Below, piece by piece: positions 12,634 through 31,197 of a DNA stretch of 64,000 bases. The DNA is taken from sequence record PP942979.1; one strand, written 5' to 3'. The translations under genes and the position numbers were made by a program. The stretch's first letter is position 1; each line of letters starts with the position of its first letter. The notes under the pieces were generated by a model. The model had not been told where the DNA came from, searched no databases, and saw only the letters and a list, made by a program, of their open reading frames with translations.

Positions 12634-13404
12634 ATGAGCAACGTTGATACAACAATGCCTGAAGGTAAGTGGGAGTTCAATGAGCCAGTTGCTGCTGTGT
12701 TTGACAACATGCTGCAAAACTCAATCCCATCTTATGATCGTATGCGTGACCTGACGTATCGTTTAGGTCGTCAGTTTGTTACACCGGGATCGGCCATCGT
12801 TGATTTAGGTGCGAGCCTGGGCCGTGCGATTGAGCCTTTCGCAAGAGAGTTCGGTCAGTATCAGTGGCATCATTGCCCTCACTCGGATGGGCCTGATACA
12901 GAGACTGGTAATCACTACAGCCTGTACGAGATCGCTCCTGCAATGCGTGAGCGTTTGATGACTAACGAGTTGTTGAACAGCGTGAACGCAAAGCTGGAAA
13001 AGGAATCTCTGGTCGATGTAGACACCTTCCGCTTTAGTGGTCAAGTTGATTGCTCACTGATTCTGAGCGTGTTGACTCTCCAGTTCACCCCTATCGAACA
13101 TCGCCAGCATATTCTGGAAAAGGTATATGACTCGCTACAGAAAGGCGGCGCGTTCATCCTGATTGAGAAAGTGCTGGGTGATGACAACTACCTGGACCGT
13201 CTGCTGGTAGATACCTACTATCAGATGAAGGGCGACAACGGCTACTCGCAGGAAAGCATTGCGACGAAACGTAAGTCACTTGAGGGCGTACTCGTTCCAG
13301 TGAAGGCCGCATGGAACGAAGAACTGCTGCGTAAGGCTGGCTTCGACCGCGTAGAGTGCTTCTACCGTGATCTGAACTTCGCAGGTTGGATTGCGATCAA
13401 GTAA
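12634..13404 (+). CDS. cmoA: CmoA-like carboxy-S-adenosyl-L-methionine synthase
   Basis: WEFNEPVAAVFDNMLQNSIPSY, DLGASLG, TLQF, GGAFILIEK, GYSQESIATKRKSLEGV parallel E. coli CmoA ([22 protein letters not shown]...GYSELEISQKRSMLENV); Arg199 equivalent retained (13270-13272). Confidence 0.88.
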   Translation: MSNVDTTMPEGKWEFNEPVAAVFDNMLQNSIPSYDRMRDLTYRLGRQFVTPGSAIVDLGASLGRAIEPFAREFGQYQWHHCPHSDGPDTETGNHYSLYEIAPAMRERLMTNELLNSVNAKLEKESLVDVDTFRFSGQVDCSLILSVLTLQFTPIEHRQHILEKVYDSLQKGGAFILIEKVLGDDNYLDRLLVDTYYQMKGDNGYSQESIATKRKSLEGVLVPVKAAWNEELLRKAGFDRVECFYRDLNFAGWIAIK

Positions 13405-13408
13405 CCGT

Positions 13409-13437
13409 GTGGGTGGCTTCGGCTGCCCACTGCTTTT
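13409..13437 (+). terminator. rho-independent terminator (interrupted U-tract)
   Basis: GTGGGTGGC-TTCG-GCTGCCCAC-TGCTTTT. Confidence 0.6.
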
Positions 13438-13449
13438 GAGGGAACAACC

Positions 13450-14316
13450 ATGGCTAATGTACGCCAAGAACGCTGCGCACGAATGATACGCGAGTCACTA
13501 ATCGCAGAAATAAAAAAGGCTCGCTCTAAACGTCCTTACGTCTTCCTCAGTGGCGGCGTAGATTCAAACTGTATTCTGTTTGCTGCACTGGCTGCTGGCT
13601 GCAAGCCAATCACACTGAGCTTTCATATGGAAGGCGTTAACAGTCGTGACTTCCGTGCGGCACAAGCTATCGCTCAGGAGTTTAATCTTGAGCTAATCGA
13701 AGTCGTTCTTCCCAACAGCTATGAGAAGTTGAAGAAAGATGTGCTGCTCATGGCCAAGCGTTACGCCTGTATTCAGAAGAACGAATTTGAATGTTCATGG
13801 CCGATGCTCTACAGCTTCTTCCACGTTCGCAATCACGCGGCAGAGAATGGCATCAAGAATCCTGTGACGTTTACCGGACAGGGCGCCGACCTGATGTATC
13901 TCAGTAGCAAGAAGGCGAGCATTCACTATAAAGATCGTCCAGACGAATGGCGTAAAGAAGGCCGCGCTAACCCACATCGTACTCAGGGCCGTATCTTACC
14001 TGTGATGGCGCGTGACGCTGGTGTGCGTAACATCAAGCCGTGGGACAGCGAAGAAATCCTGGAAGCGTTTCTCGGCACAAGCTGGGAAGACGTTAACAAG
14101 CCTCGTCAGAAAGAGCCGTCTCGTATGGCTTTCGAAGAAGACTTCAAACGTATTCGCGTATACAACCATCAGAACTTCCAACTCGGTGACACAGGCATCG
14201 CAGAGCATTTTGAAAAGCTGCTGGCCGATCCTGAGATGAATCCTGATCTTAAATACAAAAGCGTCGTCGGTGTTTACGGTGAGCTTGCCCGTAAGTATCA
14301 GGGAATCGAATCATGA
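13450..14316 (+). CDS. asparagine-synthetase-like ATP-dependent amide ligase (synthetase domain only)
   Basis: PP-loop VFLSGGVDS, TGQGADLMY (AsnB SGEGADELF), NFQLGDTG; no N-terminal Ntn glutaminase domain. Confidence 0.8.
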   Translation: MANVRQERCARMIRESLIAEIKKARSKRPYVFLSGGVDSNCILFAALAAGCKPITLSFHMEGVNSRDFRAAQAIAQEFNLELIEVVLPNSYEKLKKDVLLMAKRYACIQKNEFECSWPMLYSFFHVRNHAAENGIKNPVTFTGQGADLMYLSSKKASIHYKDRPDEWRKEGRANPHRTQGRILPVMARDAGVRNIKPWDSEEILEAFLGTSWEDVNKPRQKEPSRMAFEEDFKRIRVYNHQNFQLGDTGIAEHFEKLLADPEMNPDLKYKSVVGVYGELARKYQGIES

Positions 14317-14924
14317 TTCATATCATTGATGGTGGTGTTGGTTGTGATTACGTTTCTGAAAAGCTGCGTGACGCTGGAATCAACTGTCGTACTCATGCGC
14401 CAAACAACCCACGCGTTCGCGCTGCATACGCACCTTACGCCTCGCTGTCCATGGGCTTTAGCGTAGAAGAAATTGAGAAGCATATCGGTAACGTGCTTGG
14501 CACATATCGTGGCCTGTTTCTGATTAGCAGTTACATCGGCTCGCTGGTGGCACGTAGCATGATTGATCAATGCGGCCAAAGCCATAACATCATTTACTGC
14601 GATGACTTCAAGTGCGGTTCTCTGCCTGTCGTTGCTTCTTCTATTTCTGTAAACACCTACAAGAAGCAACGGCAACTCGGACGTATTGCTGGCCGTCTCA
14701 AACACTTTGACTTTGACCACGAATTTATTATTGCTGACAAGGCAGTGCGATTTGCGGCAGGCTCAGAGTTTGATGAACATGAAGCGCGTAGCGAACTGAA
14801 CAACCATGCGAAGTTCCTGTCGAGTCCGTCCATGATTGTTGCAGCACACAAACTCGGTGTGCGTAGCAGCATGTATCATAACTATGCAGGGCTGGTGAAA
14901 GAGTTCATTGAGAATCGCCAGTAG
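14313..14924 (+). CDS. hypothetical protein, weak resemblance to the glutamate racemase (MurI) N-terminal domain
   Basis: MIHIIDGGVG ~ MIGVFDSGVG, APYASLS ~ VPYGTKS; catalytic Cys absent; ATGA-coupled to the amide ligase. Confidence 0.45.
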   Translation: MIHIIDGGVGCDYVSEKLRDAGINCRTHAPNNPRVRAAYAPYASLSMGFSVEEIEKHIGNVLGTYRGLFLISSYIGSLVARSMIDQCGQSHNIIYCDDFKCGSLPVVASSISVNTYKKQRQLGRIAGRLKHFDFDHEFIIADKAVRFAAGSEFDEHEARSELNNHAKFLSSPSMIVAAHKLGVRSSMYHNYAGLVKEFIENRQ

Positions 14925-14942
14925 CAGTAACGAGAGGGCACG

Positions 14943-15206
14943 ATGATTAATCGCTTTCAGTTAAAACGAGTTCCAGTGATTGAAGCCTGTCAGTGGAACG
15001 GAGAGAACGTTGAGGAGATGAATCAGTTTCTCAACGGAGGTGGTTACGTTGTAGGTCGTTATGTCCAGATTGGTGTGACGGACAAACAGGGTAACCCAAC
15101 TCTGGCTAACGTAGCAGTAGGCAACTACGCAGTGAAAGACGAAGACGGCAAGTACGGCGCAATCACCGCATCAGAGTTGATGGACCTTTACGTACTGGCG
15201 GATTGA
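14943..15206 (+). CDS. conserved phage hypothetical protein
   Basis: PVIEACQWNGEN...GNYAVKDEDG pattern common in phage proteins. Confidence 0.7.
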   Translation: MINRFQLKRVPVIEACQWNGENVEEMNQFLNGGGYVVGRYVQIGVTDKQGNPTLANVAVGNYAVKDEDGKYGAITASELMDLYVLAD

Positions 15207-15213
15207 GGAACAC

Positions 15214-15669
15214 ATGAATCTTTTCTCTATTTTAAAACAGCAAGTGAAGAAAGCGCTGTCTACCGAAGCGAACCACGAACCAGAAATTCGTGCTTTGTTT
15301 GACTGGCGTTACTCAGTTGAGATCAAAGGTCAGATGTATATCGTCGGTAAGACAGGAGCAAACACCTGCTTCTATATCGAGCCGGGAACGTCTGAACCTA
15401 TCGCCTGTTACCCCGATGCGTTACTGGACAAGATCGACCAGTGGGGTTCAGGCAAGTACGTGTCGTATGCGATCTACTTCAAACGCTTCGAAAGCCCTGT
15501 TGCTGAGAACATCAAAAGTCTCGAAAAGGCAATGACAGGTAAACCGAAGACGTTTAAGAAAGGTTACTTCATCTGTGGCGTTACGCCGAAAGGCAAGCGC
15601 GTCAAGCTCTATCGTCTTCAACAGGGACTGAGCGGAATGCAGTGGGTAGCAGTGGAACCTAAAAAGTAA
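15214..15669 (+). CDS. hypothetical protein (151 aa)
   Basis: GAGGA RBS. Confidence 0.7.
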   Translation: MNLFSILKQQVKKALSTEANHEPEIRALFDWRYSVEIKGQMYIVGKTGANTCFYIEPGTSEPIACYPDALLDKIDQWGSGKYVSYAIYFKRFESPVAENIKSLEKAMTGKPKTFKKGYFICGVTPKGKRVKLYRLQQGLSGMQWVAVEPKK

Positions 15670-15697
15670 TCACGGACTGTCCGTGTGAGGAGCAAGT

Positions 15698-15991
15698 ATG
15701 ATTAGTGACATTACAGTCGGCTGTATCTATAAGTCACCTAGTGACAGACCATTTATTGTTGACTGCATTGCTGCGCACGGACAGGATTGCTCTCTACCTA
15801 TGGTCGTCTATCGTAATCTTGAAAAGACGTTAGACAAACCGGCAGGTACCGTATGGGTAATCCCTGAGTCGTTGTTCACAATGCAGTTCTCTGAGTATGA
15901 ATGTGGAGAACATCATGAACACAACGAACTTGTATCAGCATCTGGCGTCAAGGGGGTTCGATCCTTCTTTTTATCATTGCTGGGTGAGTGA
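15698..15991 (+). CDS. DUF1653-like protein
   Basis: GCIYKSPSDRPFIV..IAAH..MVVYRNL..VWVIPESLF matches the DUF1653 pattern; GAGGAG RBS. Confidence 0.6.
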   Translation: MISDITVGCIYKSPSDRPFIVDCIAAHGQDCSLPMVVYRNLEKTLDKPAGTVWVIPESLFTMQFSEYECGEHHEHNELVSASGVKGVRSFFLSLLGE

Positions 15992-16431
15992 AACACAAAT
16001 GACCGTACCTCTGTTTGCGTTTGACAGAGCGATGCGTGGTCTACAGGTCTACACACCAGATGCACCAAAGCACGACGCTAACCCGAAAGCGTGTCGTTAC
16101 TTTACGCGAGCATTCGGCGGCAAGCAGTTGGTGTGGGGATCGGAAATTAAACCTGAACGGGTCGACCGTATTCTTAACTGAGTCTGTGTTCAAGGCATGT
16201 GCATTGCATCGTCTTGGACTTAACGCTTGGTCCGTTCTTGGCTCTGATGTTAGTGACCATCTTTATCGTCAGTTGTGTCTTCTTGGTCTTCGGTTCGTTT
16301 GTCTCGGCGATAACGATCCGGCAGGGCAGAAGTTTAGTCAGACGTTTGGGCTAGGCGCTGTCAGTCGTGACCTTGATGAATTGACTGACGAGGAACTTCT
16401 CGACCTAACTCTACCATTCGTAAGGAAGTAA
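15915..16431 (+). pseudogene. Toprim (primase-like) gene split by a +1 frameshift near 16143-16147
   Basis: N-part ...GKQLVWGSE, then a different frame gives LNLNGSTVFLTESVFKA..LGDNDPAG..DLDEL (Toprim E and DxD motifs); the downstream part has no RBS/ATG of its own. Confidence 0.7.
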
Positions 16432-16432
16432 A

Positions 16433-16867
16433 ATGGAAAACAAACATAAGATCATCATTCGCATCTTAGGTGATGTGGGTAGCGGTAAGTCTGCTGCATA
16501 CTGTCGTATTGCTGCGATGCTGAAAGACAGCGGTGCGACGGTCATTCACGCCGACGAGAAAGCGTGGAACATGCTGCAAAACGCAGGTGAAGCCGACCGC
16601 GCGAAAGAAGACCTGTATACCTTCGCGCCTCAGGTTACTCTGGAAGAAGCCTGCATTCGCTCGGACTCGTCAATGTCGAAAAATCAGATCATGCAGTATT
16701 TCGCATACGCACATCTGCCTGCACATCTGCAACGTGTCAGTAAGCCGTTCGCGCTGCTGGCGCAAGAGATGGATCTGTATCTGCCCGACGGCGCTGAGAA
16801 GTCTGCTGGTCTGCGTAAACTTCTCGAAGCGAAAGACTGTGCCGTTCGTGCGGTGATGGCTAAATGA
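16433..16867 (+). CDS. hypothetical protein: N-terminal P-loop plus C-terminal Acb2/Tad1-like helical hairpin
   Basis: GDVGSGKS; YFAYAHLP...LPDGAEKSAGLRKLLEAKDCAVRA. Confidence 0.55.
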   Translation: MENKHKIIIRILGDVGSGKSAAYCRIAAMLKDSGATVIHADEKAWNMLQNAGEADRAKEDLYTFAPQVTLEEACIRSDSSMSKNQIMQYFAYAHLPAHLQRVSKPFALLAQEMDLYLPDGAEKSAGLRKLLEAKDCAVRAVMAK

Positions 16868-17196
16868 CGCTGAACCTTATCTGTCCTCCGATTGATCTGC
16901 GTGAAGCGTGGTACATGCGTCATGACTACACCAACGACCCAATCAACATTCAGAATATCATCTCCGTTAAGGCTGAGAAGTATAGCGCCTATCCTGACGA
17001 AGAAGGTACGCCTGCGATCTTCTTTAATGTTGTAGGCCGCGACAAGCCGTTGATGTGGTTGTTCCCGAAACATCGTTATGGGTTTGAGAAGGCTGTCGAA
17101 CTGCGCGACGCTATACTTGAACAGATAGAGCGTGGTAGCTATTCTCCAGACGTTACAACCACGCAGTATCTTGAGGCATTAAAAACAATCGACTAG
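16864..17196 (+). CDS. hypothetical protein (110 aa)
   Basis: Overlaps the stop of the upstream gene. Confidence 0.65.
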   Translation: MTLNLICPPIDLREAWYMRHDYTNDPINIQNIISVKAEKYSAYPDEEGTPAIFFNVVGRDKPLMWLFPKHRYGFEKAVELRDAILEQIERGSYSPDVTTTQYLEALKTID

Positions 17197-17206
17197 GGAG
17201 GCGATC

Positions 17207-17233
17207 ATGAACGATTGGTTCTACGGCGGTTAA
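17207..17233 (+). CDS. putative 8-aa minigene MNDWFYGG
   Basis: GGGAGG RBS 7 nt before ATG; lies between the upstream stop and the terminator. Confidence 0.35.
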   Translation: MNDWFYGG

Positions 17234-17247
17234 TGTGCAGTAACTCA

Positions 17248-17273
17248 AAGGGTGGCCTAATGGCTGCCCTTTT
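17248..17273 (+). terminator. rho-independent terminator
   Basis: AAGGGTGGCC-TAAT-GGCTGCCCTT-TT. Confidence 0.75.
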
Positions 17274-17395
17274 CTGATCTTAGACAACTAAAATAAGCCA
17301 TTAGGGATAGCGAATAACCGTGCGTAAGGCATATAAAACCATGTGTAGGCAGCGTAGAAACACCACCTTTTTCTTGAGCAGTGGGAAGCGCTTAA

Positions 17396-17405
17396 AATCT
17401 GTAAA
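17396..17405 (+). promoter_or_regulatory. AATCTGTAAA motif, copy 2
   Basis: 20 nt upstream of the dam start, intergenic. Confidence 0.6.
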
Positions 17406-17425
17406 ACAAGAGAAAGGAGAGAAAA

Positions 17426-18268
17426 ATGACAGTAATAAGTCCAATCCGTTATCAGGGCAATAAGCGAAGCCTTATCCCTATCATTCTCGAACACACGCCA
17501 AGCGTACAAGACTGTCCGCGTATGGTTGATGTGTTTGGCGGTAGTGCTACTGTGTGCGCTAACATGCCACAGAAGTTTCGCGTGTACAACGAACTCAGTC
17601 CTCAGGTATTTGAGATCGTTAAGATGCTGGTGGAGCAAGACCCGAAGAAAACTTTAGGTCAAGTTAAGCGACTGGTAAAGCACTGGTGCCTGACAAACAG
17701 CAACGAAGAAAACTACGATGCGTTTCGTACTGTCGTCCAAAAGAAGCGAACGCCTATTCTCCATTACGTGGCGCACCGACATGCACACTCGAACATGCTG
17801 CGCTTTAATCAGCAGGGTATCTACAACGTAGGCTTTGGTGATCGTGGACTGATTGGAAAGTTCGACGAACTGGAAGACGAACTCACTACGTTCCACAGTC
17901 ACATGCAGGGTGTCCACCTGACGAACATGAAGTATGGTAAGTTGTTGAGCCGTCTTGGTAGTCAACTGAACTGCAACACGTTCTGCTATTTCGACCCGCC
18001 GTATCTTGCCTCAGGTGCTATGCAGTATGGAAAGTGGACAGAAGCGAACGAGCGCAATCTACTCGCAGCGCTTGAGCAACTGAATCGCTTAGGTGTGCCG
18101 TGGATGTTGAGCAACGTTACTGAACATCGACACTTCTCAAACGACTTGTTGAAGCGTTGGCTAAAGAAACATGCAACGACTGTGCTCTACCCAAACAAAA
18201 GCTATGCGATGAACAATGGCCAGAGCGGCTCGCATGGTACCGTTGAAATTCTGGCAATGAACTACTGA
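17426..18268 (+). CDS. dam: DNA adenine methyltransferase (T4 Dam family)
   Basis: SPIRYQGNKRSL, VDVFGGSATV, YFDPPY, WMLSN, EILAMNY. Confidence 0.88.
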   Translation: MTVISPIRYQGNKRSLIPIILEHTPSVQDCPRMVDVFGGSATVCANMPQKFRVYNELSPQVFEIVKMLVEQDPKKTLGQVKRLVKHWCLTNSNEENYDAFRTVVQKKRTPILHYVAHRHAHSNMLRFNQQGIYNVGFGDRGLIGKFDELEDELTTFHSHMQGVHLTNMKYGKLLSRLGSQLNCNTFCYFDPPYLASGAMQYGKWTEANERNLLAALEQLNRLGVPWMLSNVTEHRHFSNDLLKRWLKKHATTVLYPNKSYAMNNGQSGSHGTVEILAMNY

Positions 18269-18275
18269 GGTAATC

Positions 18276-18584
18276 ATGGAACCACCAGTCGGTACAAACA
18301 TGAAGTTGTGGAGTATTCTCGGCTCAATCGTTCGTGAGCTTGAGAAGATTAACGCCACTGCTTGGTATTTGTCGAAAGACCCGAAAGATACCTGCGGCGT
18401 TATTTGCTGCGCTATCCCTGATTACACGGACGCCACTCTAATCAAAGAGATTGAGCTGCGTGTCGGTCAGATTGAAGAACGCAAACGCTACATCGCAGGT
18501 CTGCAAAACGGTGAAGCTGGCCATACCTTTGCCTGCGAGCAACGTGCCGACGAACTCTACCAGAAGTATTGTGGTAAGCGTTAA
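18276..18584 (+). CDS. hypothetical protein (102 aa)
   Basis: GAGG RBS. Confidence 0.65.
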   Translation: MEPPVGTNMKLWSILGSIVRELEKINATAWYLSKDPKDTCGVICCAIPDYTDATLIKEIELRVGQIEERKRYIAGLQNGEAGHTFACEQRADELYQKYCGKR

Positions 18585-18592
18585 TCTGTAAA
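18583..18592 (+). promoter_or_regulatory. AATCTGTAAA motif, copy 3
   Basis: Overlaps the upstream stop; 47 nt before ATG 18639. Confidence 0.6.
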
Positions 18593-18638
18593 ACAATAAC
18601 ATAACAACCTTTTGACTACACACTGCAAGGATATAAAA

Positions 18639-19220
18639 ATGAAAGAGTTCCTGTCTAAGTATTTCGATCTGAAGGAGTACGACCGTTGGCCGCTCGCTCT
18701 GCTTTTCGTTGGAGCTGTGTTCGCAATCGCAAGTGACTTCCTGTTTGCCTACGATGCAGTCTGGCCGATGTTCGTCGTCTTCGCGCTGTATACCGTAGCG
18801 GTCATTCTCGATGTGCGCAATATCATGGAGTCAGGCAACACCGCTCCGTCGTGGGGATGGCTGTTGTTCATTCCTGTTTATCTGTGGAAGCGCGACACTC
18901 TTACGCAAAAGAAGAATCGCAACATCTTCTATGCGTGGATGATTCTGTGCATTCTCTCATTCGGCAGTAGTTATCTCGCAATGAACCGCGATAACCACGA
19001 GCTGGTGGAACAGGATGTGTGTAGTGTGCTCGATACGATTGACTCATTGCAGTCCAACAACATCACCTGCGTCCGTGCGTACAACATGGAAGAGCAGTAT
19101 GACGGGTACTGGAAAGGCAGTGCCCATCTATCCAACAACCGCGATGTTAATGTAAGCGCTGATTACAACAAAGATAAAGACAGCGTGTACGTTCAAATTC
19201 ATAGCCTGTTAGGAGAGTAA
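18639..19220 (+). CDS. membrane protein with about 4 TM helices and a soluble C-terminal domain
   Basis: Four hydrophobic segments, then a hydrophilic domain with 2 Cys; AAGGA RBS. Confidence 0.7.
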   Translation: MKEFLSKYFDLKEYDRWPLALLFVGAVFAIASDFLFAYDAVWPMFVVFALYTVAVILDVRNIMESGNTAPSWGWLLFIPVYLWKRDTLTQKKNRNIFYAWMILCILSFGSSYLAMNRDNHELVEQDVCSVLDTIDSLQSNNITCVRAYNMEEQYDGYWKGSAHLSNNRDVNVSADYNKDKDSVYVQIHSLLGE

Positions 19221-19221
19221 C

Positions 19222-19914
19222 GTGGAACAAAATCCCCTCGATATGCCTGTTCATATCGTTAACGGTTTTCAATTCCGAGAAGAATCTGCAAAGCTGATGG
19301 CTTATGCGCTGGACATGAAACGTCTCGGTGCTAACATCGACGCGAACTTCTGGGACACGCGCATTCTCGACGACGACCAGAATATTGACATGATTCAACG
19401 CCTGTCTACTACTGGTCCTGTGATTAATCGTCGTAGTTTCGACCTGTTCGAATCGGCTGACCGCTGCCGCAGAAATGCCGCCGTTGTGTTCGAAGCGCTT
19501 ATCTACGGCTTTGACCTGATGATGCAGGAATTCCGTGAATCGTTCCTAGCGGATGAAGGTGTCTCGCCCTGGATTGATCGCCACGACACAAACATGTTTA
19601 GTCGTGAACTGTTGCAATATCTCACTCGTCCGGCGGAAGAATCTGACCTACTCGATCTGCCAGTCTATCGTCGTCAGGCTGCGGCTCTGTGTGACGTGGA
19701 GCCAGTGCTGCTTACGTTGCGTGTACATAACGAAATTCAGTACGTCTGGAACGGTGAGTGGCGAGCGCTGACGAACGCTCCGATCGAAACACGCCGTCGT
19801 CAATGCGTTAACTGGTATTACAACCACGCATTCACAATCCATCGTCTGCGTCACATGCTGTCGCGCTACCTGTATCACAAATTTCCTGAGCAGTTCGGAG
19901 GCAAAAGTGCGTAA
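19222..19914 (+). CDS. hypothetical protein (230 aa)
   Basis: AGGAG RBS, GTG start. Confidence 0.7.
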   Translation: MEQNPLDMPVHIVNGFQFREESAKLMAYALDMKRLGANIDANFWDTRILDDDQNIDMIQRLSTTGPVINRRSFDLFESADRCRRNAAVVFEALIYGFDLMMQEFRESFLADEGVSPWIDRHDTNMFSRELLQYLTRPAEESDLLDLPVYRRQAAALCDVEPVLLTLRVHNEIQYVWNGEWRALTNAPIETRRRQCVNWYYNHAFTIHRLRHMLSRYLYHKFPEQFGGKSA

Positions 19915-20245
19915 CATCATCGCTGTACTGAAAATGCGTTACATCGAACAACTGCGTGACGGCTACGAAGACGGCCCGATTTTCGATATTGTTTACTTTG
20001 ACGGCGAAGCGAAAGAAGCACCGCATTTTGTGCGTACTCGTATTGCCGATACGCTGTTCCCAAACAGTGTCGAAGATTCCGCTGTTGGTGGTTACGACTA
20101 TTTGGTGCTGAGTGTACGTGACCACGACAACGATGTTGAACTCAAGCCGGGTGACTTTGTTGTGTTCCGTGAAAACAGCAGCTTCACAACTCTTCGTGGT
20201 TTTGATACAGCAGAGGTGATTGATGGAAAACTCCGTCTTAGTTGA
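19907..20245 (+). CDS. hypothetical protein (112 aa)
   Basis: GGAGG RBS, GTG start. Confidence 0.65.
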   Translation: MRNIIAVLKMRYIEQLRDGYEDGPIFDIVYFDGEAKEAPHFVRTRIADTLFPNSVEDSAVGGYDYLVLSVRDHDNDVELKPGDFVVFRENSSFTTLRGFDTAEVIDGKLRLS

Positions 20246-23033: not shown

Positions 23034-23056
23034 ATGGGGCCTAGTGCCCCATTTTT
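23034..23056 (+). terminator. rho-independent terminator
   Basis: ATGGGGC-CTAGT-GCCCCAT-TTTT. Confidence 0.75.
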
Positions 23057-23074
23057 CGTTTGAGGATAAAAACG

Positions 23075-23602
23075 ATGCAAACAGCCTATCGCTGCAAACA
23101 CTGCAAGTATGTCCACATCGGCAAAGTGTCCAGTTGTGATTGTCAGGGCAGTAAGAAATTCGAATATACGTTGGTGCAAATCATCGACGTGCCCGAGAAC
23201 GAAGACCAAGTACCTCCGTTCAAAGATCTCAAACACTCTCGCGCTCAACGCTACGTGAACGTTAAAGACGGCACGTATGGTAATGGCATCTATGAACTTC
23301 GTGAGAAGCGTGATGGTGAGCGCTACTGGTGGACGCATCTCGGTACTATGCAGAGCGGGTTCGATAGCACTGATATGCCTTACCAGTTCTGCGAAGACAA
23401 TCGTAAGGCGAATGTTTTACTGGCTGCCGCTGGTCCTGTTATGCTCGAAGCGCTATACATGGCGTATCAGTATTTCCATCTCAAGCGTGAGGTTCAGGGC
23501 AGTTCTATTAAGAACGATAGCCGACTGTCCATCATCGCCGACGCGATTCGTCAGGGTACTGACCTATCTGTGTTCGATACACTTCAAATACCTAAGGAAT
23601 AA
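23075..23602 (+). CDS. hypothetical protein with an N-terminal Cys cluster
   Basis: CKHC...CDC; GAGGA RBS. Confidence 0.65.
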   Translation: MQTAYRCKHCKYVHIGKVSSCDCQGSKKFEYTLVQIIDVPENEDQVPPFKDLKHSRAQRYVNVKDGTYGNGIYELREKRDGERYWWTHLGTMQSGFDSTDMPYQFCEDNRKANVLLAAAGPVMLEALYMAYQYFHLKREVQGSSIKNDSRLSIIADAIRQGTDLSVFDTLQIPKE

Positions 23603-23604
23603 CC

Positions 23605-24240
23605 ATGTTGATTGATGCGTTGAAAGCAATTCCTGCGATCATACTCTGCTATATAGTGTGGCGCTATTTCCTGAACAAGCGTGACCACGATCGTCATCTG
23701 ATTAAGGCGCAAGAGCATTACAATCGTGGCCACCTCGATCGTGGTAACGCCTGGATTCATTTGAAGACGGGTCGTCCTTACACCGTGCTGTGGTTGACCA
23801 ACACGGGTACGTCTAAGGCAGGCTGGGAAATCAACGTCGTATACACGCATGACTTCCAGCAAATATATAGCCGCCCGTTCAGTGAGTTCTGTCACAAGTT
23901 TCATCATATTAGTCGTGGTGAGAATGAACAGCATTTCGAAGCGTTGCTAGTGACTGAGCAGATGCTCAACAATACTGAACTACGTCTTCCTAAGGAAGGT
24001 GAGATTTGGTTTGAAGGTACTGTCCATGCAACACCGCCAGAACTGGTGAAGCAGGGTCATGCACCTCAAGTCGTGTCTCAACGTCGTGCGCACATTGATA
24101 TGGTACTGGCTTTAGGTGAAGCGCATCCAGTCGTCGTATTTACTGTAAATGAAAAGCAGACAGCAATGTTGCTTTCACAGTTCATTTTCATCTATCGCAA
24201 AGAGGTGTCCTTCGATGGAACAACCAGCTCTTGTGTTTAA
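23605..24240 (+). CDS. membrane-anchored protein with a DUF1653-like domain
   Basis: N-terminal TM; WIHLKTGRPYTVL...VVY...IYSRPFSEF. Confidence 0.6.
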   Translation: MLIDALKAIPAIILCYIVWRYFLNKRDHDRHLIKAQEHYNRGHLDRGNAWIHLKTGRPYTVLWLTNTGTSKAGWEINVVYTHDFQQIYSRPFSEFCHKFHHISRGENEQHFEALLVTEQMLNNTELRLPKEGEIWFEGTVHATPPELVKQGHAPQVVSQRRAHIDMVLALGEAHPVVVFTVNEKQTAMLLSQFIFIYRKEVSFDGTTSSCV

Positions 24241-24562
24241 ATACGTGATGTTCGTCCGTACGCGCACCAAAGAGCGTGACGACGGCGTTTACTTGCCTGT
24301 GATATTCCCGACGCATATCATGCACTCTGATATGTCAGACGAAATGCGCGGCTACGGTATCTCCAACGGTTTTCGGGAGAATCGCTATCATCAGCGTATC
24401 GATCCCATCTCGGCTGGCTTTATCAATCTGCGAACGCTTCTATGCTTCGGTGAATCTGAATCTCTGGAACTGAAATCTCGTCCAGAAGATAGCACCATCA
24501 TCGCAGAGTATATGAAGACCCAGGGTAAAGGCGCAGAAGCTCCTCCAGAGGATGATGAATGA
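24215..24562 (+). CDS. conserved phage hypothetical protein
   Basis: VIFP..IMHS..ISAGF..CFGESESLELKSRPED pattern; GAGGTG RBS. Confidence 0.65.
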   Translation: MEQPALVFKYVMFVRTRTKERDDGVYLPVIFPTHIMHSDMSDEMRGYGISNGFRENRYHQRIDPISAGFINLRTLLCFGESESLELKSRPEDSTIIAEYMKTQGKGAEAPPEDDE

Positions 24563-24903
24563 TGGACATTCTGAGATCAATCTGGGCTAGCCCTTTCTGG
24601 GACAGTCCTGCATCTGCATTTGTGCCTACGGCGCTTATTATCGCATTCTTTATCTACACCGAATGGCGTGAGCGTCGTACTCTGCGTCTGTCTCGTAAGG
24701 CATTCGCAGACGGCTGGGACCCGAAGAAGAATACTCTCTTCCGCCACAAGTGGTTCCCATTCATGACTTGTCGTGTGGACTTTTATTCGAATAGCCCGAA
24801 TGATAAGTTCACGCCGTCAGTGTTTGTGCAAAGGAATGGTGGGCGTTATGTAGAGATGCCTGCCTATGTGTTACGTTACCGCTATAATGAGATTAAACAA
24901 TGA
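24559..24903 (+). CDS. hypothetical membrane protein
   Basis: One TM segment; GAGGA RBS. Confidence 0.6.
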   Translation: MMDILRSIWASPFWDSPASAFVPTALIIAFFIYTEWRERRTLRLSRKAFADGWDPKKNTLFRHKWFPFMTCRVDFYSNSPNDKFTPSVFVQRNGGRYVEMPAYVLRYRYNEIKQ

Positions 24904-25241
24904 CACCAGCAATCCGCTTTAACGAGCAGACCTGTGAACTGCTGAAAAAGATCTTCGGCAACAACAAGCCTTTCTTTGTTGTGCGCCGCGACACAATCAT
25001 CGAAAACGATAAGCAGTTCGGTGAGCGTGTGTATCTGGCCAATGGCACGCATGTCATTACCGTGCCTAACGTACAGGGCCTCGATCTCGGAGATAAGCTC
25101 TATCTCGCAGAAGACAGTGAGGTGTACGAGTGGCATCCTCATTTCGACCGCCCCAAATACGAAGCAAGCAACAATCAAAAGGAAGCTCTCGCTTTTGGTC
25201 TTCATCCTATCGTCCATCATAAAGACAGCCGGAACTCTTAA
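24900..25241 (+). CDS. hypothetical protein (113 aa)
   Basis: ATGA overlap. Confidence 0.65.
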   Translation: MTPAIRFNEQTCELLKKIFGNNKPFFVVRRDTIIENDKQFGERVYLANGTHVITVPNVQGLDLGDKLYLAEDSEVYEWHPHFDRPKYEASNNQKEALAFGLHPIVHHKDSRNS

Positions 25242-26344
25242 TGAACAATCAACCTCTCGATCTGCGCGATCCCAATCAGTACGAACTGTATTCTCTGCAT
25301 TGCGTGGATGAACAGTACATCAATCTCGGCAATGCAATTCTGATGCACGGTACTGACGAAACAGATCCCGGTCGTACCGAAGACACGTGGCGCACTCTGA
25401 TCGGTATTGGCTTTCAATTGACCAACACGCTGATCGCTTTCCCTGCGTTGCTATCTGCGCGTAAGAACTGGTTCGCAGCCGTTGATGAAATGTGCTGGAT
25501 GGCTCGCGGTGAAACAAATATCGGCAGTCTCAATTCCAAAATCTGGAACGAGTGGGCGGACGAAGATGGCGAGTGCGGTCCTATCTACGGTCTGATGTGG
25601 CGCATGTGGCCTGATATCAAAACCTTCCCGACTATTGAGTCGATGAAGGAGCGTCAGATTAGCGATGCTGAAATCGAGCGTATCTCCAAAGAGATCAATC
25701 GCATGAAGGCCGCTGGTTACACTGAAACGGAAATGGCTGACGGCCGTGTGTGCTACGAAGGTACAATCGATCAGTTTGCTGATGCTCTGCGTCAGGTAAT
25801 GAATCGCAGTCGCTCACGTCGCATCCGTGTTCAGGCATACAATCCAGCGTATCTCAACATGCAGGGTCTGCCGCCGTGCCACACTGAGTTTGAGTTCAAT
25901 GTGACTAAGCCTACGCTGTATGAAACGGCTCAGATGGAAGCACGTCAGATGGCGCCTGCCGAAGACTCGCTGCACATCACGGTGACCATGCGTTCCAACG
26001 ACACGCTTCTGGGCAGACCGTTCAACATCATCGGCTACAGCGCCATGCACCAAATGATCGCGAAGTGGGCAGGCATGAACGTCGGCAGCTTTACGCTGAA
26101 TACTACCAACACGCATCTGTACACTCACCACTTCGAAGCGTTCAAAAAGCAAAGTGAGCAGTGGGCAGTTCTCGCAGACAACATGAAACGCACTGGCGAA
26201 CCTGTTGTCTATCCTATGCTGGAAATCAGCGACGACATTCTTGGCCTGACTCCGGAAGAGTTGCTTGATAACGCCAATGCTGAATGGTTCCAGCTTCTCG
26301 ATTATGCACCAGCACAGGCAGTCAAAGGACGGGTGACAAAGTGA
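25241..26344 (+). CDS. thyA: thymidylate synthase (ThyA family)
   Basis: DRTGTG-like GRTEDT, IWNEWAD..GPIYG..WR, SRSRR, LPPCH, MRSNDTLLGRPFN, NTHLY. Confidence 0.9.
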   Translation: MNNQPLDLRDPNQYELYSLHCVDEQYINLGNAILMHGTDETDPGRTEDTWRTLIGIGFQLTNTLIAFPALLSARKNWFAAVDEMCWMARGETNIGSLNSKIWNEWADEDGECGPIYGLMWRMWPDIKTFPTIESMKERQISDAEIERISKEINRMKAAGYTETEMADGRVCYEGTIDQFADALRQVMNRSRSRRIRVQAYNPAYLNMQGLPPCHTEFEFNVTKPTLYETAQMEARQMAPAEDSLHITVTMRSNDTLLGRPFNIIGYSAMHQMIAKWAGMNVGSFTLNTTNTHLYTHHFEAFKKQSEQWAVLADNMKRTGEPVVYPMLEISDDILGLTPEELLDNANAEWFQLLDYAPAQAVKGRVTK

Positions 26345-26994
26345 ACAACAACATTCTTCTGATCAAGCGCGTTTCTTCTTACCTGTATGTAGGCTATTGC
26401 GAAAATGCAAGTGACATTCCCCGTCGTGGTGTTGAGATGCTGGACATTGTTGTGCCGAGCCCTGTAAGTGGTGACTCAGACAACATTCTCGATATGAAAG
26501 CGCGTTGCATCTATCATTTGCCACACAACTGTTTCCTGCTGCAACATGTAGATGGTGAGTTCGAGGGCAACGAATACCCGGCGTGGACGAAAAAGCATTG
26601 TCGGGATAACATGGAAATCTTCCAGCGTTCGTCTCATGGCCGTGAGCAGGCAGCGATTGAACTCATGCTGAATGAACTGCGTGATGCGGAAGTTGAGCAT
26701 CCGGAATGGCCGGAAGAAGCAATTCATGCAGGCTCCATTCTCGTGGAAGAAGCGGGTGAGTTGCTGCGCGATTGCGTGTCCTTCGATGAAACAGGTGACG
26801 ATAAGCTGATCGTTAATATGCAGATCGAAGCCGTACAGACAGGTGCAATGGCATTGCGCTTCCTGAAAAATCTGTCCACGTCGCAGAAGCGCACTATCCC
26901 GCATAATGCTCTGCGTACTATCTTAAACTCAGAGATGACTCCGGAAGAGCAACTGGCGGAGATGCGTCGTCTTATCGATCACGGAGTACGCTAA
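26341..26994 (+). CDS. MazG-like (all-alpha NTP pyrophosphohydrolase) domain protein
   Basis: ELRDAEVEHPEWP...ILVEEAGEL...EAVQTGAMALRF; GTG start 26341. Confidence 0.65.
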   Translation: MNNNILLIKRVSSYLYVGYCENASDIPRRGVEMLDIVVPSPVSGDSDNILDMKARCIYHLPHNCFLLQHVDGEFEGNEYPAWTKKHCRDNMEIFQRSSHGREQAAIELMLNELRDAEVEHPEWPEEAIHAGSILVEEAGELLRDCVSFDETGDDKLIVNMQIEAVQTGAMALRFLKNLSTSQKRTIPHNALRTILNSEMTPEEQLAEMRRLIDHGVR

Positions 26995-27926
26995 TGCGTT
27001 TACTAAAGTATATCCCAAGTGCAGGCATCACGCACACGCCACCAGCCGGCGGTGAGTATGTTCGTGATATGGTAATCGACTTTGGCGATCATCCGAAGCC
27101 TGACGTAGGTCACCATGATGAACTCTGTCTGTTCGATCTGCGTCTGACCAATGTGGATGTGTATCACGAACAAGATAGCGTCCACATCTGCCTGCCTGAC
27201 ATGAGCCACATCTACGCCAACTTCGATATGGAGATCTGCCGCTCGCAGGAGTATCAGTTCTGGATGGGTGACAACGCTCATGCTCCTTCTGCTGATGCTA
27301 TCGTTCACGCACATATCGTTAAAGGTCATCTTCCTAATCTGCACAAAGACTTCGATGCGTTTGTCGAATGGCTGTTTGATCGTATGCGTGAAATTCCTCG
27401 TCTCAACATCGATCACATGGTGCTGAAAGGCAAAGGTCAAATGTACGATGCAAATACCAAAAACTCGTATGACCTTTGGGGCATGTTCCGCTACTGGTTG
27501 ATGCTGGGTCGTAATCTGACTATCGGGTATTCGCTCGACAATCAGATAACGCTCAACGATACACACATCTCTGAGAAGGGTGCGCGCTGGTGGTTGATTG
27601 AGCACAACAAACAACTGATGGAAGTCGCGCGTGAGAACGATCTGCTGGCTGCATTCATCACGTTTGGCTCCGATAGCCCTGGCTCTGAGGACGAGTATGC
27701 GTATACGTTCGTTGGCAAAGAAGGCAACTTCATGCGCAGCCACGTAGACGTTAGCGAGTTCATGCACCTCGCTGTTCACGGCCACTTCCCTGAACTGGTC
27801 TGCGATTCGAGCGGCAAGAACTTCAACGTGACGTTTAACTTCGCGCAGTATTTCCCGGAAGAGTATCACGCGTACCAAAACTATCGCGGCGGTGATTACC
27901 ATCGCGCTCTGTCTCGCTTCGTCTGA
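26994..27926 (+). CDS. hypothetical protein (310 aa, His/Asp-rich)
   Basis: TAATG-coupled, phage codon usage. Confidence 0.75.
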   Translation: MRLLKYIPSAGITHTPPAGGEYVRDMVIDFGDHPKPDVGHHDELCLFDLRLTNVDVYHEQDSVHICLPDMSHIYANFDMEICRSQEYQFWMGDNAHAPSADAIVHAHIVKGHLPNLHKDFDAFVEWLFDRMREIPRLNIDHMVLKGKGQMYDANTKNSYDLWGMFRYWLMLGRNLTIGYSLDNQITLNDTHISEKGARWWLIEHNKQLMEVARENDLLAAFITFGSDSPGSEDEYAYTFVGKEGNFMRSHVDVSEFMHLAVHGHFPELVCDSSGKNFNVTFNFAQYFPEEYHAYQNYRGGDYHRALSRFV

Positions 27927-27969
27927 CGGGCTTCGGCCTCCTGTCAGTAATTTGATTGTCTAACAGGAG
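27923..27969 (+). promoter_or_regulatory. alternative hairpin / anti-SD structure upstream of ORF 27977
   Basis: UUCG hairpin 27923-27947; its 3' arm CTCCTGTCAG can alternatively pair 9 of 10 with CTAACAGGAG (SD). Confidence 0.4.
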
Positions 27970-27976
27970 AGCCGAC

Positions 27977-28312
27977 ATGAACTACGATCCAAAGAAAGAT
28001 TTCCACCCGTTTCAATATCTGGGCGCACCTAAAGTCCCGCACACAGGCTTCTTAGGTAATACAGTGAACTTGGTTGAGAACGACGTAAACATCGGCAGCG
28101 ATGAATGCACGTTCGAGTTCACTGTAGCTCAGATGAACGCGATGGACAGAGGTACTGTTACGTTCAGGGCGAAAGACTCTGGCGGTGGTATCGACATTAA
28201 GAAATGCTCAGTCTCAGGTTTGAAAATGGTAATTAAGCTGGACAGAAGGGTGATCGAGTTCGGCAAAGTTCAAGTCGAATGGCAGACTACTCCTCGCCAC
28301 TACTATTACTGA
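27977..28312 (+). CDS. hypothetical beta-rich protein (111 aa)
   Basis: CAGGAG RBS before ATG 27977. Confidence 0.65.
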   Translation: MNYDPKKDFHPFQYLGAPKVPHTGFLGNTVNLVENDVNIGSDECTFEFTVAQMNAMDRGTVTFRAKDSGGGIDIKKCSVSGLKMVIKLDRRVIEFGKVQVEWQTTPRHYYY

Positions 28313-28321
28313 ATCTGTAAA
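28312..28321 (+). promoter_or_regulatory. AATCTGTAAA motif, copy 5
   Basis: 35 nt upstream of the ParB-like gene. Confidence 0.6.
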
Positions 28322-28355
28322 GACAGAGAAAGAGCAACCGATAAGAGATACGACA

Positions 28356-29066
28356 ATGGCAAAAACTGCTATCAAAACAAAGGACGGAAAGAAGAAAAAG
28401 AATGATGGGCTAAAGTTCGAGTTGAATAAACTCAGCTCCGTCAATCAATTAAAAGGCGCAGCGTATAACCCGCGTTTCATTACAGACAGTCGCCTGAAAG
28501 CACTCGAAGGTTCTTTGGGTAGCTTCGGCGACTTGTCTGGTATCGTGTTCAACAACAACATCAAATCTGGTGTGTTGATCTCAGGCCACCAGCGCTTGAA
28601 GTCAATCGAAGGCTGGAAGACTCGTATCGAGGTCCAGAAGTCTGTTGATAAGCACGGCACTATCGGCCTGGGTTATATTCACGCAACGCATCCGAAGAAG
28701 TCTGATAAGGTGATCAGCATTCCTCTGCGTATTGTGAACTGGACCGATAAGAAAGCAGAGTACGCTGCAAACATCGCGGCGAACGCCCACGGCGGTGAAT
28801 TCGATAACAAGAAACTCGCCAAGCTGGTTGAGCAACTCGACCTCAACACAATCAAGCCGCAGTTGCTTGGCCTTGACCCGTTAGAGATTCGCGGTCTGCA
28901 AGCCAAGCTGAAAGTTCAGGCTGTTGTTCAGGACGAGAAACGTGCTGGCAAGACAACTGGCCAGATGAACGGCAGTACCGGTAAGTTCAATGAGTACAAC
29001 CCTGATGATGTGGGTGAAGCTCTGAACTGCACCTGCCCGCGTTGTGGATTCAAGTTCGAGGGATAA
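28356..29066 (+). CDS. ParB/Sulfiredoxin N-terminal domain protein with a C-terminal Zn ribbon
   Basis: AAYNPR, LEGSLGSFG, LISGHQRL, ANIAANAHGGEFD, CTCPRCGFKF. Confidence 0.8.
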   Translation: MAKTAIKTKDGKKKKNDGLKFELNKLSSVNQLKGAAYNPRFITDSRLKALEGSLGSFGDLSGIVFNNNIKSGVLISGHQRLKSIEGWKTRIEVQKSVDKHGTIGLGYIHATHPKKSDKVISIPLRIVNWTDKKAEYAANIAANAHGGEFDNKKLAKLVEQLDLNTIKPQLLGLDPLEIRGLQAKLKVQAVVQDEKRAGKTTGQMNGSTGKFNEYNPDDVGEALNCTCPRCGFKFEG

Positions 29067-29067
29067 T

Positions 29068-31197
29068 ATGATCATCAAGCCGCCTACTATGAAGGAAATC
29101 AACAAGCTGGATAAACCCTGGCGTGGTATGAGTTTCTTCGCAGGTTGCGGTGGGTCTTCGACCGGTCACAAGATGGCCGGTATCGACATTGTGTTGAGCA
29201 ACGAGTTTGTTGACTCAGCACGAGAGTCCTACGAAGCGAACCATCCGACAACTAAAGTGCTGCCTCATGACATTCGCCGCTTAGACCCAGGCAAGCTGTT
29301 GCGCTTCGCTGGTCTGAACAAAGGCGAACTGGATTTACTTGACGGTAGTCCTCCTTGCTTCACCGAAGACACGATCATTCATACAGCAGACGGCATGAAG
29401 TTCATTTCGGACATGAACGTCGGCGATAGAGCAATGACCAGTGTCGGGCAGTATCATCCCGTGTACGACACGATGGTGCGACCTTACGTCGGCACGATGC
29501 ACAAAATCGAAACACTGATCAGTAGCAACAAAGCAACGCCTGAGCACCCGTTCTTTATCAGACGTCCACTTGCGGCGGGCGGTTACTCTGAACCATTCTG
29601 GTGTGATGCTAAAGACGTGCAGGAAGGCGATCTGCTCGGTACACCTCGTGTTACGCCTGACCAGCCTGCTGATGTGTACCACAATCAGATGAATCAATTG
29701 CCGAAGATGATTCGTCAGTGGGTAAGCATTCCTGAGTTCTGGTGGATGGTAGGTCACTGGTGTGATCGTGGTTCAATCGAAACTATCGGTGGCATTGAAG
29801 CAGTTAGCTTCGAGTCGCATACCAGTATTGAAAACGCGATGATTGAGCAGGCGTTTGACGCGCTTAAACTCAGCAGCCTGAATCGCATCGAAACAATGAC
29901 AGCGCAACGTAGAACGTTCCGTACTGTTATTGATGTTGAGCTGGTGCAGTTTCTGCGCCGCTTTATCAGTCACGGCAACAACACGTTCTCTCGTCGTCTG
30001 CCTGCCATGTTGTTCCACATCAATGCGGAACTGAAACAGCAATTCATTCTGGGCTGTGCTGGCATGGATTATGTGACTGCTATGGGCACAGGCATTGCTA
30101 TTACTTCTGCAAGCAAGCGCTTCCTGCTTGAACTGAATTACCTGTGCTGCTCGGCATTCAATCGTCCCCTGTTCGACGGACTGACTTGGGGCGATCTGTA
30201 TTTCGGTAGTTCGTTAACGCCTCGTGAACGTAACAGTGCGCGTGAGCATATCGGCTACCTGTTCTTGCAGGACGAGCACAACTTCTTCCATGAGTTCAGC
30301 AAAGAAGACCCGCATCTCTGGACAGAAGTGATTGAGAACCTCGCGTATCAAGCAACCTGTGACGTCTATAACTTCTCTGTCGAAGTGGACGAGACTTATG
30401 TGGCGAACGGTGTTGTTGTTCACAACTGCAAAGGCTTCTCTACTGCTGGCGTGAAAGAAGAAGGCTGGGGCAAAGAAGTTAAGTACAGTGATAACAAGTA
30501 TCAGCAGGTTGATGACCTGTTCGATCAGTATTGTCGTATGTTGAAAGGCATGATGCCGAAAGTGTTCACTGCGGAAAACGTTAGTGGTCTTGTTAAGGGT
30601 GCCTCGAAAGGTTACTTCCTTGAGATCATGCGAACGTTTGACGAGATTGGCTATTACGTCCGAGCGCCGCTGCTTAATGCTGCATGGCTTGGCGTGCCTC
30701 AGTCTCGTGAGCGTATCATCTTTATGGGTGTGCGCAAAGACGTAGCACACGCTCTCGGCTATAAGAGCAATCAGGCTGCTGTGCCTGATGTAGTGCCGTG
30801 CGATACAATGGCGTTCCTTGCAGATGCCCTGCCTCACATTCAGCGGTATAAGTCCACGAAGAAGGATATCATCACATACCTTCCTGCGATGAACGGACCG
30901 ATGCCGACGATCACTGCGGCTGATGCTATCGCGTATGAGACAGCCCGTTTCTCGTCTGCTGGGTTCGTCGAGGACAACAAAGGTCATCGTCGTAAGTTGA
31001 CCATCGACGAACTGAAAGTTGTTTCCGGCCTGCCGTCAGACTATAAACTGAAAGGCAAGTTTGAAGAACAGTGGGAGCGACTCGGTCGTATCTGTGTTCC
31101 GGCAATGACACAGGCTGCGTCGAAAGCTCTTATCGAACACGTCCTGCTGCCTTATGCTAAGAAGCGTAAGAAGAAGCCTGGCGAAATCTTTAAGTAA
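29068..31197 (+). CDS. C5-cytosine DNA methyltransferase-fold enzyme with intein; candidate cytosine carboxymethyltransferase
   Basis: Motif I FFAGCGG, motif IV GSPP|CKGFS, motif VI AENVSG, motif VIII GVPQSRERIIF, motif IX RKLTIDE; motif X reads LGRICVP instead of xGN(A/S)V. Confidence 0.88.
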   Translation: MIIKPPTMKEINKLDKPWRGMSFFAGCGGSSTGHKMAGIDIVLSNEFVDSARESYEANHPTTKVLPHDIRRLDPGKLLRFAGLNKGELDLLDGSPPCFTEDTIIHTADGMKFISDMNVGDRAMTSVGQYHPVYDTMVRPYVGTMHKIETLISSNKATPEHPFFIRRPLAAGGYSEPFWCDAKDVQEGDLLGTPRVTPDQPADVYHNQMNQLPKMIRQWVSIPEFWWMVGHWCDRGSIETIGGIEAVSFESHTSIENAMIEQAFDALKLSSLNRIETMTAQRRTFRTVIDVELVQFLRRFISHGNNTFSRRLPAMLFHINAELKQQFILGCAGMDYVTAMGTGIAITSASKRFLLELNYLCCSAFNRPLFDGLTWGDLYFGSSLTPRERNSAREHIGYLFLQDEHNFFHEFSKEDPHLWTEVIENLAYQATCDVYNFSVEVDETYVANGVVVHNCKGFSTAGVKEEGWGKEVKYSDNKYQQVDDLFDQYCRMLKGMMPKVFTAENVSGLVKGASKGYFLEIMRTFDEIGYYVRAPLLNAAWLGVPQSRERIIFMGVRKDVAHALGYKSNQAAVPDVVPCDTMAFLADALPHIQRYKSTKKDIITYLPAMNGPMPTITAADAIAYETARFSSAGFVEDNKGHRRKLTIDELKVVSGLPSDYKLKGKFEEQWERLGRICVPAMTQAASKALIEHVLLPYAKKRKKKPGEIFK
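29356..30426 (+). mobile_element. intein (357 aa) with a degenerate LAGLIDADG-type endonuclease region
   Basis: Starts CFTEDT, block B KATPEHPF, block F VYNFSV..DETYVANGVVVHN, +1 residue Cys; EN blocks MVGHWCDRG and FILGCAGMD. Confidence 0.92.

Follow-up and report, generated by a model that had tools for sequence, protein, structure and literature searches.

A probable carboxymethylcytosine hypermodification module with an intein-split methyltransferase homologue in the Erwinia jumbo phage phB78

Erwinia phage phB78 (PP942979.1) is an Alexandravirus, a jumbo myovirus with a genome of 261,824 bp that was isolated on Erwinia amylovora. The stretch analysed here agrees with this record at 100% identity over bases 12634-14924, with matching coordinates. 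The first 64 kb of its genome (64,000 nucleotides, the whole stretch analysed and hereafter called the window) encode homologues of the carboxy-S-adenosylmethionine (carboxy-SAM or Cx-SAM) synthase CmoA, the C5-cytosine carboxymethyltransferase CmoX and the adenosine monophosphate (AMP)-forming amide ligase CmoY, together with a ParB-like protein. These four genes very probably constitute a module that hypermodifies cytosines in the phage's own DNA after replication, and it is just as probable that phB78 DNA carries an amide derived from carboxymethylcytosine. Judged by its sequence, the module is phB78's own copy of an already known CmoA/CmoX/CmoY pathway, and its CmoX homologue bears every sequence-level hallmark of that enzyme. 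In the Synechococcus phage S-B43 (Yang et al., Nat Commun, Dec 2025, PMC12783734), CmoA produces Cx-SAM, SpCmoX forms 5-carboxymethylcytosine (5cxmC) at GC sites, and the AsnB-like SpCmoY couples glycine using adenosine triphosphate (ATP); the virion DNA holds the glycyl amide. A first-pass annotation of the window had proposed such a pathway from three open reading frames (ORFs), all of which are present exactly at 12634-13404, 13450-14316 and 29068-31197, and had mentioned a similar chemistry in cyanophages. That chemistry is indeed the one published for S-B43. The parts of the proposal concerning carboxy-SAM, an Arg-substituted C5-methyltransferase and amidation match the S-B43 system by homology and by diagnostic residues, whereas 5-carbamoylmethylcytosine, one of the products put forward, is less likely to be the one formed.

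The methyltransferase homologue (Pfam DNA_methylase, E 6.5e-38) has the SpCmoX crystal structure, 8YF3, as its closest solved relative (E 2.9e-55, in three stretches spanning both exteins of the intein-split protein), with M.HaeIII at 2.8e-16 and M.MpeI (4DKJ) a weak match (E 8.2e-5). Over the exteins, identity is 38% with SpCmoX and 48.5% with gp309 of phage PaBG. In SpCmoX, Arg350 binds the cofactor carboxylate, and the wild-type enzyme takes Cx-SAM only (PMC12783734). R674 of phB78 CmoX (in ERLGRICVP) falls opposite this R350 (in ERVGRMVPP), which replaces the Asn of motif X; the earlier reading of the motif as LGRICVP, with the Arg encoded at 31087-31089, was thus exact, and the alignment proposed as a check on it places the Arg at the Asn position. 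The PMC12783734 survey defined 5,615 candidate CmoX sequences by an SPPC motif together with R350, many of them linked to CmoA, AMP-forming ligases and ParBc-domain proteins. In phB78 the SPPC motif is divided by the intein: GSPP closes the N-extein and Cys454 opens the C-extein, the predicted spliced sequence being GSPPCKGFSTAG. The cytosine-contacting motifs E503-N504-V505 (ENV) and R547-E548-R549 (RxR) are invariant in the alignment of CmoX homologues (alignment A1).

The intein, which the first-pass annotation had also recognized, occupies amino acids 97-453 and is absent as one exact gap from the intein-less homologues PaBG gp309 (GSPP-CKSFSTSG) and S-B43 SpCmoX (GSPP-CSAFSVAG). It has the features of a class 1 intein, namely Cys1 (CFTEDT...), block B TPEH and a C-terminal VVHN followed by the +1 Cys454. 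Since splicing would give GSPPCKGFSTAG, the +1 nucleophile is at the same time the catalytic Cys, and CmoX activity would depend on protein splicing. One could therefore picture the module as a decaying remnant that yields no active form of the interrupted methyltransferase: 357 amino acids separate the two parts of the catalytic motif, and the Pfam matches of the intein (Intein_splicing, E 6.7e-8; Hint_2, 3.9e-5) both lie under the gathering score. This is most improbable, because the frame is open through the intein and the splicing residues have been conserved where the rest of the intein has not. A same-site intein is carried by all Erwinia records, by Dickeya phage AD1 and by Yersinia phage fHe-Yen9-02; the inteins of fHe-Yen9-02 and Yoloswag are only 34-37% identical to that of phB78, compared with 71-77% for the C-exteins, and Cys1, TPEH, HN and the +1 Cys are always kept. 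Fast intein divergence combined with retained splicing residues and conserved exteins is what one would expect if the gene is spliced and under selection, and argues for a CmoX precursor that is spliced and functional.

The insertion site itself is not a novelty specific to CmoX, an idea that was considered and rejected. An ordinary C5-methyltransferase of Escherichia jumbo phage A4 (Asteriusvirus, 355 kb; locus L013, 1270-3165) likewise has an intein whose insertion point immediately precedes the motif IV catalytic Cys, with the same architecture of C1, HN and +1 Cys, but this enzyme has the canonical motif X Asn (LGNGWT) and the two inteins are only ~24% identical. No Pfam endonuclease family matched the phB78 intein. 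Its central domain aligns to the LAGLIDADG-bearing region of the A4 intein, in which the motifs are clearer; in phB78 they look degenerate by eye.

The proposed cofactor supplier is related both to E. coli CmoA (4GEK; E 2.4e-29, ~34% identity) and to the biochemically validated SpCmoA (E 5e-26, 28% identity). Its sole NCBIfam matches are the two CmoA equivalog models, TIGR00740 (E 2.9e-41) and PRK15451 (E 4.3e-30), and it also matches PHROG 4752 (E 1.3e-81). R213 (TKRKSLEG) pairs with R199 of the E. coli enzyme (QKRSMLEN; numbering verified on the MG1655 gene), in agreement with the first-pass claim that the equivalent of Arg199 is kept. In MAFFT alignments (A5/A7), SpCmoA (locus L003, 4083-4775) has Glu in the Arg199 column and an Arg four residues on, while the phB78 and PaBG proteins retain the E. 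coli-type KR at this position. Either Arg199 may not be strictly needed across phage CmoAs, or the alignment may be shifted at the SpCmoA Glu.

Could the three genes instead be functionally unrelated, with CmoA boosting cmo5U in host tRNA, the methyltransferase acting as an ordinary 5-methylcytosine methylase and the ligase serving some other role? GenBank names the phB78 CmoA gene 'tRNA methyltransferase', the host has CmoB, and the genes lie 16 kb apart. We nevertheless regard this explanation as very improbable. The methyltransferase has an Arg where SAM-dependent C5-methyltransferases keep Asn, and SpCmoX takes only Cx-SAM. The tRNA partner CmoB, reported earlier to be missing from the window, was not found in the complete phB78 genome record either, and among phage records generally the only CmoB homologue was one small Salmonella fragment. 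The genes are moreover distributed in an all-or-none fashion, and their homologues are contiguous elsewhere.

Co-occurrence across phage genomes had been named beforehand as an observation on which the prediction could fall, and the prediction came through it. CmoA, the CmoX C-extein, a ligase and the ParB-like protein are all present in the same 53 phage records (48 from Erwinia phages, two from Dickeya phage AD1, one from a Yersinia phage and two from PaBG), yet JA11, JA13, JA29 and JA33, related Dickeya jumbo phages with a 49% identical DNA polymerase, have none of the four genes. The module genes had already appeared in Table 5 of Day et al. 2018, where they were left uninterpreted as shared accessory genes common to AD1 and Y3 and absent from JA11. 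In phB78 the genes form two pairs, cmoA-ligase and ParB-cmoX, 16 kb apart in one genome. The PaBG genes run contiguously in the order ParB-like gp310, CmoX gp309, CmoA gp308, a 150-amino-acid ORF and ligase gp306, and a metagenomic contig, identified by way of a ligase homologue of 38% identity, shows the order ParB, ParB, CmoX (ERIGR), ligase, CmoA, its CmoA being 43% identical to that of phB78. Among 80 IMG/VR loci with relatives of the phB78 ligase, CmoA was found within 10 kb in 76 and a CmoX/C5-methyltransferase in 65; the motif X residue of these 65 enzymes was Arg in 63, undetermined in two and Asn in none. Eight loci of at least 15 kb had no C5-methyltransferase nearby. Seven of these are of the Erwinia-jumbo type, which makes the 16-kb split a trait of that lineage, and the eighth (L057) lacks CmoA too.

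The ligase next to cmoA was described in the first-pass annotation as a PP-loop enzyme of the AsnB type lacking a glutaminase domain, a description that holds. It has an Asn_synthase match in Pfam (E 8.3e-9) and the PP-loop motif LSGGVDS, of which S34, G36 and D38 are invariant in every ligase type compared; it is 35% identical to the characterized glycine ligase SpCmoY (E 7e-39). The top Foldseek matches of its AlphaFold2 (AF2) model (mean predicted local distance difference test score, pLDDT, 92.6) are the synthetase halves of beta-lactam synthetase, carbapenam synthetase and AsnB, with template modelling (TM) scores of 0.69-0.75 on the query and ~0.43 on the targets, the whole query being aligned to only ~43% of each target. 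Because the model superposes over its full length on synthetase halves only, the protein is, as modelled, an AsnB-type adenylating domain, and neither Pfam nor the AF2 model with Foldseek revealed a glutaminase domain.

Which amine such an enzyme would couple bears directly on the final base. AsnB-type synthetase domains can use ammonia, and the fold of the ligase matches AsnB; the same pathway could then end in 5-carbamoylmethylcytosine formed with free ammonia. We consider this outcome unlikely. The phB78 ligase lacks a glutaminase domain and is similar to a glycine ligase, and the PMC12783734 survey assigned ammonia to ligases bearing a glutamine-hydrolysing domain, while the domain-less SpCmoY uses glycine. 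Residue 225 is Arg in the phB78 type, PaBG, SpCmoY and the metagenomic relatives, Thr in the AD1 type (B) and Asn in the Y3 type (C). An Arg shared with SpCmoY and lost in the other ligase types would fit an amino-acid carboxylate, and Arg225 is a possible carboxylate-binding residue. Our best guess for the coupled amine is an alpha-amino acid, for instance glycine.

The ligase is also the part of the module that varies most among relatives. AD1 and Alexandra share 83-84% identity with phB78 in CmoA and 91-96% in the CmoX C-extein, but only ~25% in the ligase, and the phB78 ligase has more in common with SpCmoY (35%) than with its counterparts in the phages closely related to phB78. In otherwise syntenic phages, different cassettes fill the slot that separates cmoA from a conserved gene for a 203-amino-acid protein (Table 1); their ligases are of three types that are mutually only 25-35% identical. 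The swapped cassettes hint at differing final bases. It is conceivable, and we put it forward tentatively, that the slot is a diversification hot spot, that the phB78 adduct differs from 5-glycyl-carboxymethylcytosine and that the syntenic Erwinia and Dickeya phages each make a base of their own. If so, some bases might bear D-amino acids or be hydroxylated, and the phages would offer a natural combinatorial series on a single carboxymethyl handle.

Several observations weigh against a hypermodification module of the S-B43 kind. The CmoA homologue scores under the curated cut-offs of both of its models (141.7 versus 193.3 bits for TIGR00740, 105 versus 285 bits for PRK15451), and, with the host already making carboxy-SAM for its tRNA, the phage CmoA might in principle have a different purpose. 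Identity between CmoX and SpCmoX is only 38%, and the two align poorly in the target recognition region; the published target motif is therefore not transferable to the phB78 enzyme. The ligase shares only 35% identity with SpCmoY, and those of close relatives differ greatly from it, which leaves the amine unfixed by homology.

Given the retained residues and the linkage of the genes, hypermodification of the phage DNA remains the reading we favour, and a model of the pathway can be proposed. CmoA would turn SAM and host prephenate into carboxy-SAM, as suggested by homology and the retained Arg. The CmoX precursor would excise its intein, joining GSPP to CKGFSTAG and restoring the catalytic PPC, in keeping with the intact splicing residues and their conservation. 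By analogy to the SpCmoX structure, Cys454 of the mature enzyme would attack C6 of cytosine, Arg674 would hold the carboxylate of the cofactor and the carboxymethyl group of carboxy-SAM would be moved to C5 to give 5-carboxymethylcytosine. The AsnB-type ligase would finally adenylate the new carboxylate with ATP and couple an amine to form the amide, with the ParB-like protein as a constant partner of the module. By analogy to S-B43, the modification is likely to benefit the phage by shielding its DNA against restriction by the host and against similar nucleases; 5cxmC protects DNA from HhaI in vitro (PMC12783734).

A gene for the ParB-like partner noted in the first pass is present. The protein matches PHROG 620, 'ParB-like partition protein', with E 5.7e-32, and its identity to PaBG gp310 is 43% (E 3e-50), although no Pfam family, PF02195 included, matched it even at E <= 1. 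The position of its gene directly 5' of CmoX is kept in relatives. A further partner had been called MurI-like, most likely the 203-amino-acid protein encoded at 14313-14924. It is the only ORF in the neighbourhood with a racemase-like N-terminus, a likeness seen by eye; no Pfam, NCBIfam or PHROG family matched, a profile of 13 homologues gave no PDB match at E <= 10, and the AF2 model was unusable (pLDDT 41.9). Homologues are confined to this phage group, and the gene is missing from PaBG, Snuvirus and Yoloswag, all of them module carriers; its distribution does not track the module. PaBG gp305 is of equal length, but at 17% identity, which is not significant, it was rejected as a homologue. 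A racemase partner was accordingly dropped. Among the traits thought to be distinctive of phB78, the 16-kb split thus stands as lineage-specific; the intein site also occurs in an ordinary C5-methyltransferase, the association of ParB and CmoX is not new and is already in PMC12783734, and the MurI-like partner is without support. The 146-amino-acid ORF 5' of cmoA (12140-12580) was likewise rejected as a module member, as it has no similarity to PaBG gp307 and is variable in relatives.

Table 1. Features of the predicted module in the phB78 window, and ligase cassettes in the slot between cmoA and the 203-amino-acid gene of related phages (positions in related phages refer to the loci named)
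Feature	Position	Strand	Remarks
CmoA homologue (carboxy-SAM synthase)	12634..13404	+	256 amino acids; PDB 4GEK, TIGR00740 and SpCmoA matches
Codon of CmoA Arg213 (equivalent of E. coli Arg199)	13270..13272	+	alignments
CmoY-like AMP-forming amide ligase, AsnB synthetase domain only	13450..14316	+	288 amino acids; Pfam, SpCmoY homology, AF2/Foldseek
PP-loop ATP pyrophosphatase motif LSGGVDS (ligase amino acids 33-39)	13546..13566	+	translation
Codon of ligase Arg225, candidate specificity residue	14122..14124	+	alignment of ligase types
203-amino-acid protein	14313..14924	+	in 40 phage records, conserved on the 3' side of the variable cassette
ParB-like protein, C-terminal CxxC...CxxC zinc-ribbon-like tail, immediately 5' of CmoX	28356..29066	+	PHROG 620; PaBG gp310
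CmoX precursor, C5-cytosine carboxymethyltransferase homologue split by intein	29068..31197	+	709 amino acids; 8YF3 best solved relative
N-extein (amino acids 1-96), motif I FAGCGGSS through GSPP	29068..29355	+	alignment
Intein (amino acids 97-453, 357 amino acids)	29356..30426	+	clean gap in intein-less homologues
C-extein (amino acids 454-709): catalytic Cys of motif IV (PPC-KGFSTAG), ENV, QSRER, target recognition region, motif X	30427..31197	+	
Codon of Cys454, intein +1 nucleophile and predicted catalytic Cys (SpCmoX C98)	30427..30429	+	alignments
Codon of Arg674 in LGRICVP (SpCmoX Arg350; replaces motif X Asn)	31087..31089	+	alignments
Slot cassette, phB78 and pEa_SNUABM_30/39/2/35/36/5			ligase A alone
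Slot cassette, AD1 and Alexandra	L004 4016-5933 (AD1)		DUF1611 protein + ligase B
Slot cassette, pEa_SNUABM_23	L005 1234-5331		420-amino-acid protein + DUF1611 + alanine-racemase-like protein + ligase B
Slot cassette, pEa_SNUABM_7	L008 1328-4507		420-amino-acid protein + DUF1611 + ligase B
Slot cassette, Y3	L006 1438-3233		ligase C + 2OG-Fe(II) oxygenase

The genes of interest sit in a plus-strand block for replication and nucleotide metabolism that includes a DNA polymerase, a Dam-family methylase, a dCMP deaminase and a thymidylate synthase homologue. The Dam-family adenine methyltransferase (17426-18268, +) matches TIGR00571 just under the cut-off (E 3.5e-30), and N6-methyladenine (6mA) is probably present in phB78 DNA besides the cytosine modification. 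The thymidylate synthase homologue (25241-26344, +; 367 amino acids), which at its 3' end shares 61 nucleotides with the ORF that follows (26284-26994), has the catalytic Cys (PPCH), a dUMP-type Asn (PFNI) and large insertions relative to solved enzymes. A role as hydroxymethylase was considered and rejected: given the dUMP-type Asn, the catalytic Cys and a score above the TIGR03284 cut-off, the gene was treated as a thymidylate synthase with insertions. The terminase large subunit (2489-5320, +; 943 amino acids) has a weak Intein_splicing match at amino acids 227-406 (E 1.7e-4) and is probably a second intein-bearing gene in the window, which agrees with the report in the PaBG paper that terminases in this phage group contain inteins. 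Three GenBank product names in the window look weakly founded: the 'O-acetyl-ADP-ribose deacetylase' (10481-11074, +) has no Pfam match at E 1e-3, and the 'DNA ligase' (5361-5576, +; 71 amino acids) and 'DNA primase' (15999-16181, +; 60 amino acids) are much too short for such enzymes.

The phB78 module would widen the range of carboxymethylcytosine hypermodification, newly described in cyanophages, to jumbo phages of Erwinia, Dickeya, Yersinia and Pseudomonas that can be cultured, among them candidates for the biocontrol of fire blight. The DNA of module-bearing phages is predicted to resist some restriction enzymes and to behave oddly in nanopore, bisulfite or enzymatic methylation assays. 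Still worth attention are the identity of the phB78 amide and the diversity of the cassettes among sister phages; near-identical phages with swapped ligase cassettes are a ready panel for exploring the range of amines that can be coupled and the residues that select them.

Erwinia, jumbo phages, PaBG and inteins are not mentioned in the text and supplement passages of PMC12783734, and a search of papers on PaBG, AD1 and jumbo phages turned up neither an earlier mention of the pathway nor a further publication that connects CmoA with jumbo phages. S-B43 and phB78 share the same three enzyme families, the SPPC cysteine, an Arg at the R350 position and a PP-loop ligase without glutaminase domain, with CmoA present and CmoB absent; the ParB-like gene of phB78 recalls the ParB-domain association noted in PMC12783734. 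The genes are adjacent in S-B43 and split 16 kb apart in phB78, a 262-kb jumbo myovirus of an enterobacterial plant pathogen whose CmoX has an intein at the catalytic Cys. The module proteins of the two phages are only 28-38% identical, and the E. coli-type KR of phB78 CmoA at position 199 contrasts with the Glu aligned there in SpCmoA. The nearest homologues outside the Erwinia/Dickeya/Yersinia group are PaBG gp306-gp310 (CmoX 48.5%, CmoA ~47%, ligase 45% and ParB 43% identity), which differ in being encoded by contiguous genes, with an intein-less CmoX and the 150-amino-acid ORF separating cmoA from the ligase gene. A basic residue in the place of the motif X Asn is also found in M.MpeI N374K, where it enables the use of carboxy-SAM (PMC12783734, discussion); this enzyme is engineered, has Lys rather than Arg and targets CG. 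The tRNA cmo5U pathway of E. coli, finally, uses the same cofactor, and its CmoA is ~34% identical to the phB78 homologue, which keeps Arg199. The acceptor enzyme of that pathway, CmoB, acts on U34 of tRNA, whereas phB78, having no CmoB, pairs CmoA with a homologue of DNA C5-methyltransferases.

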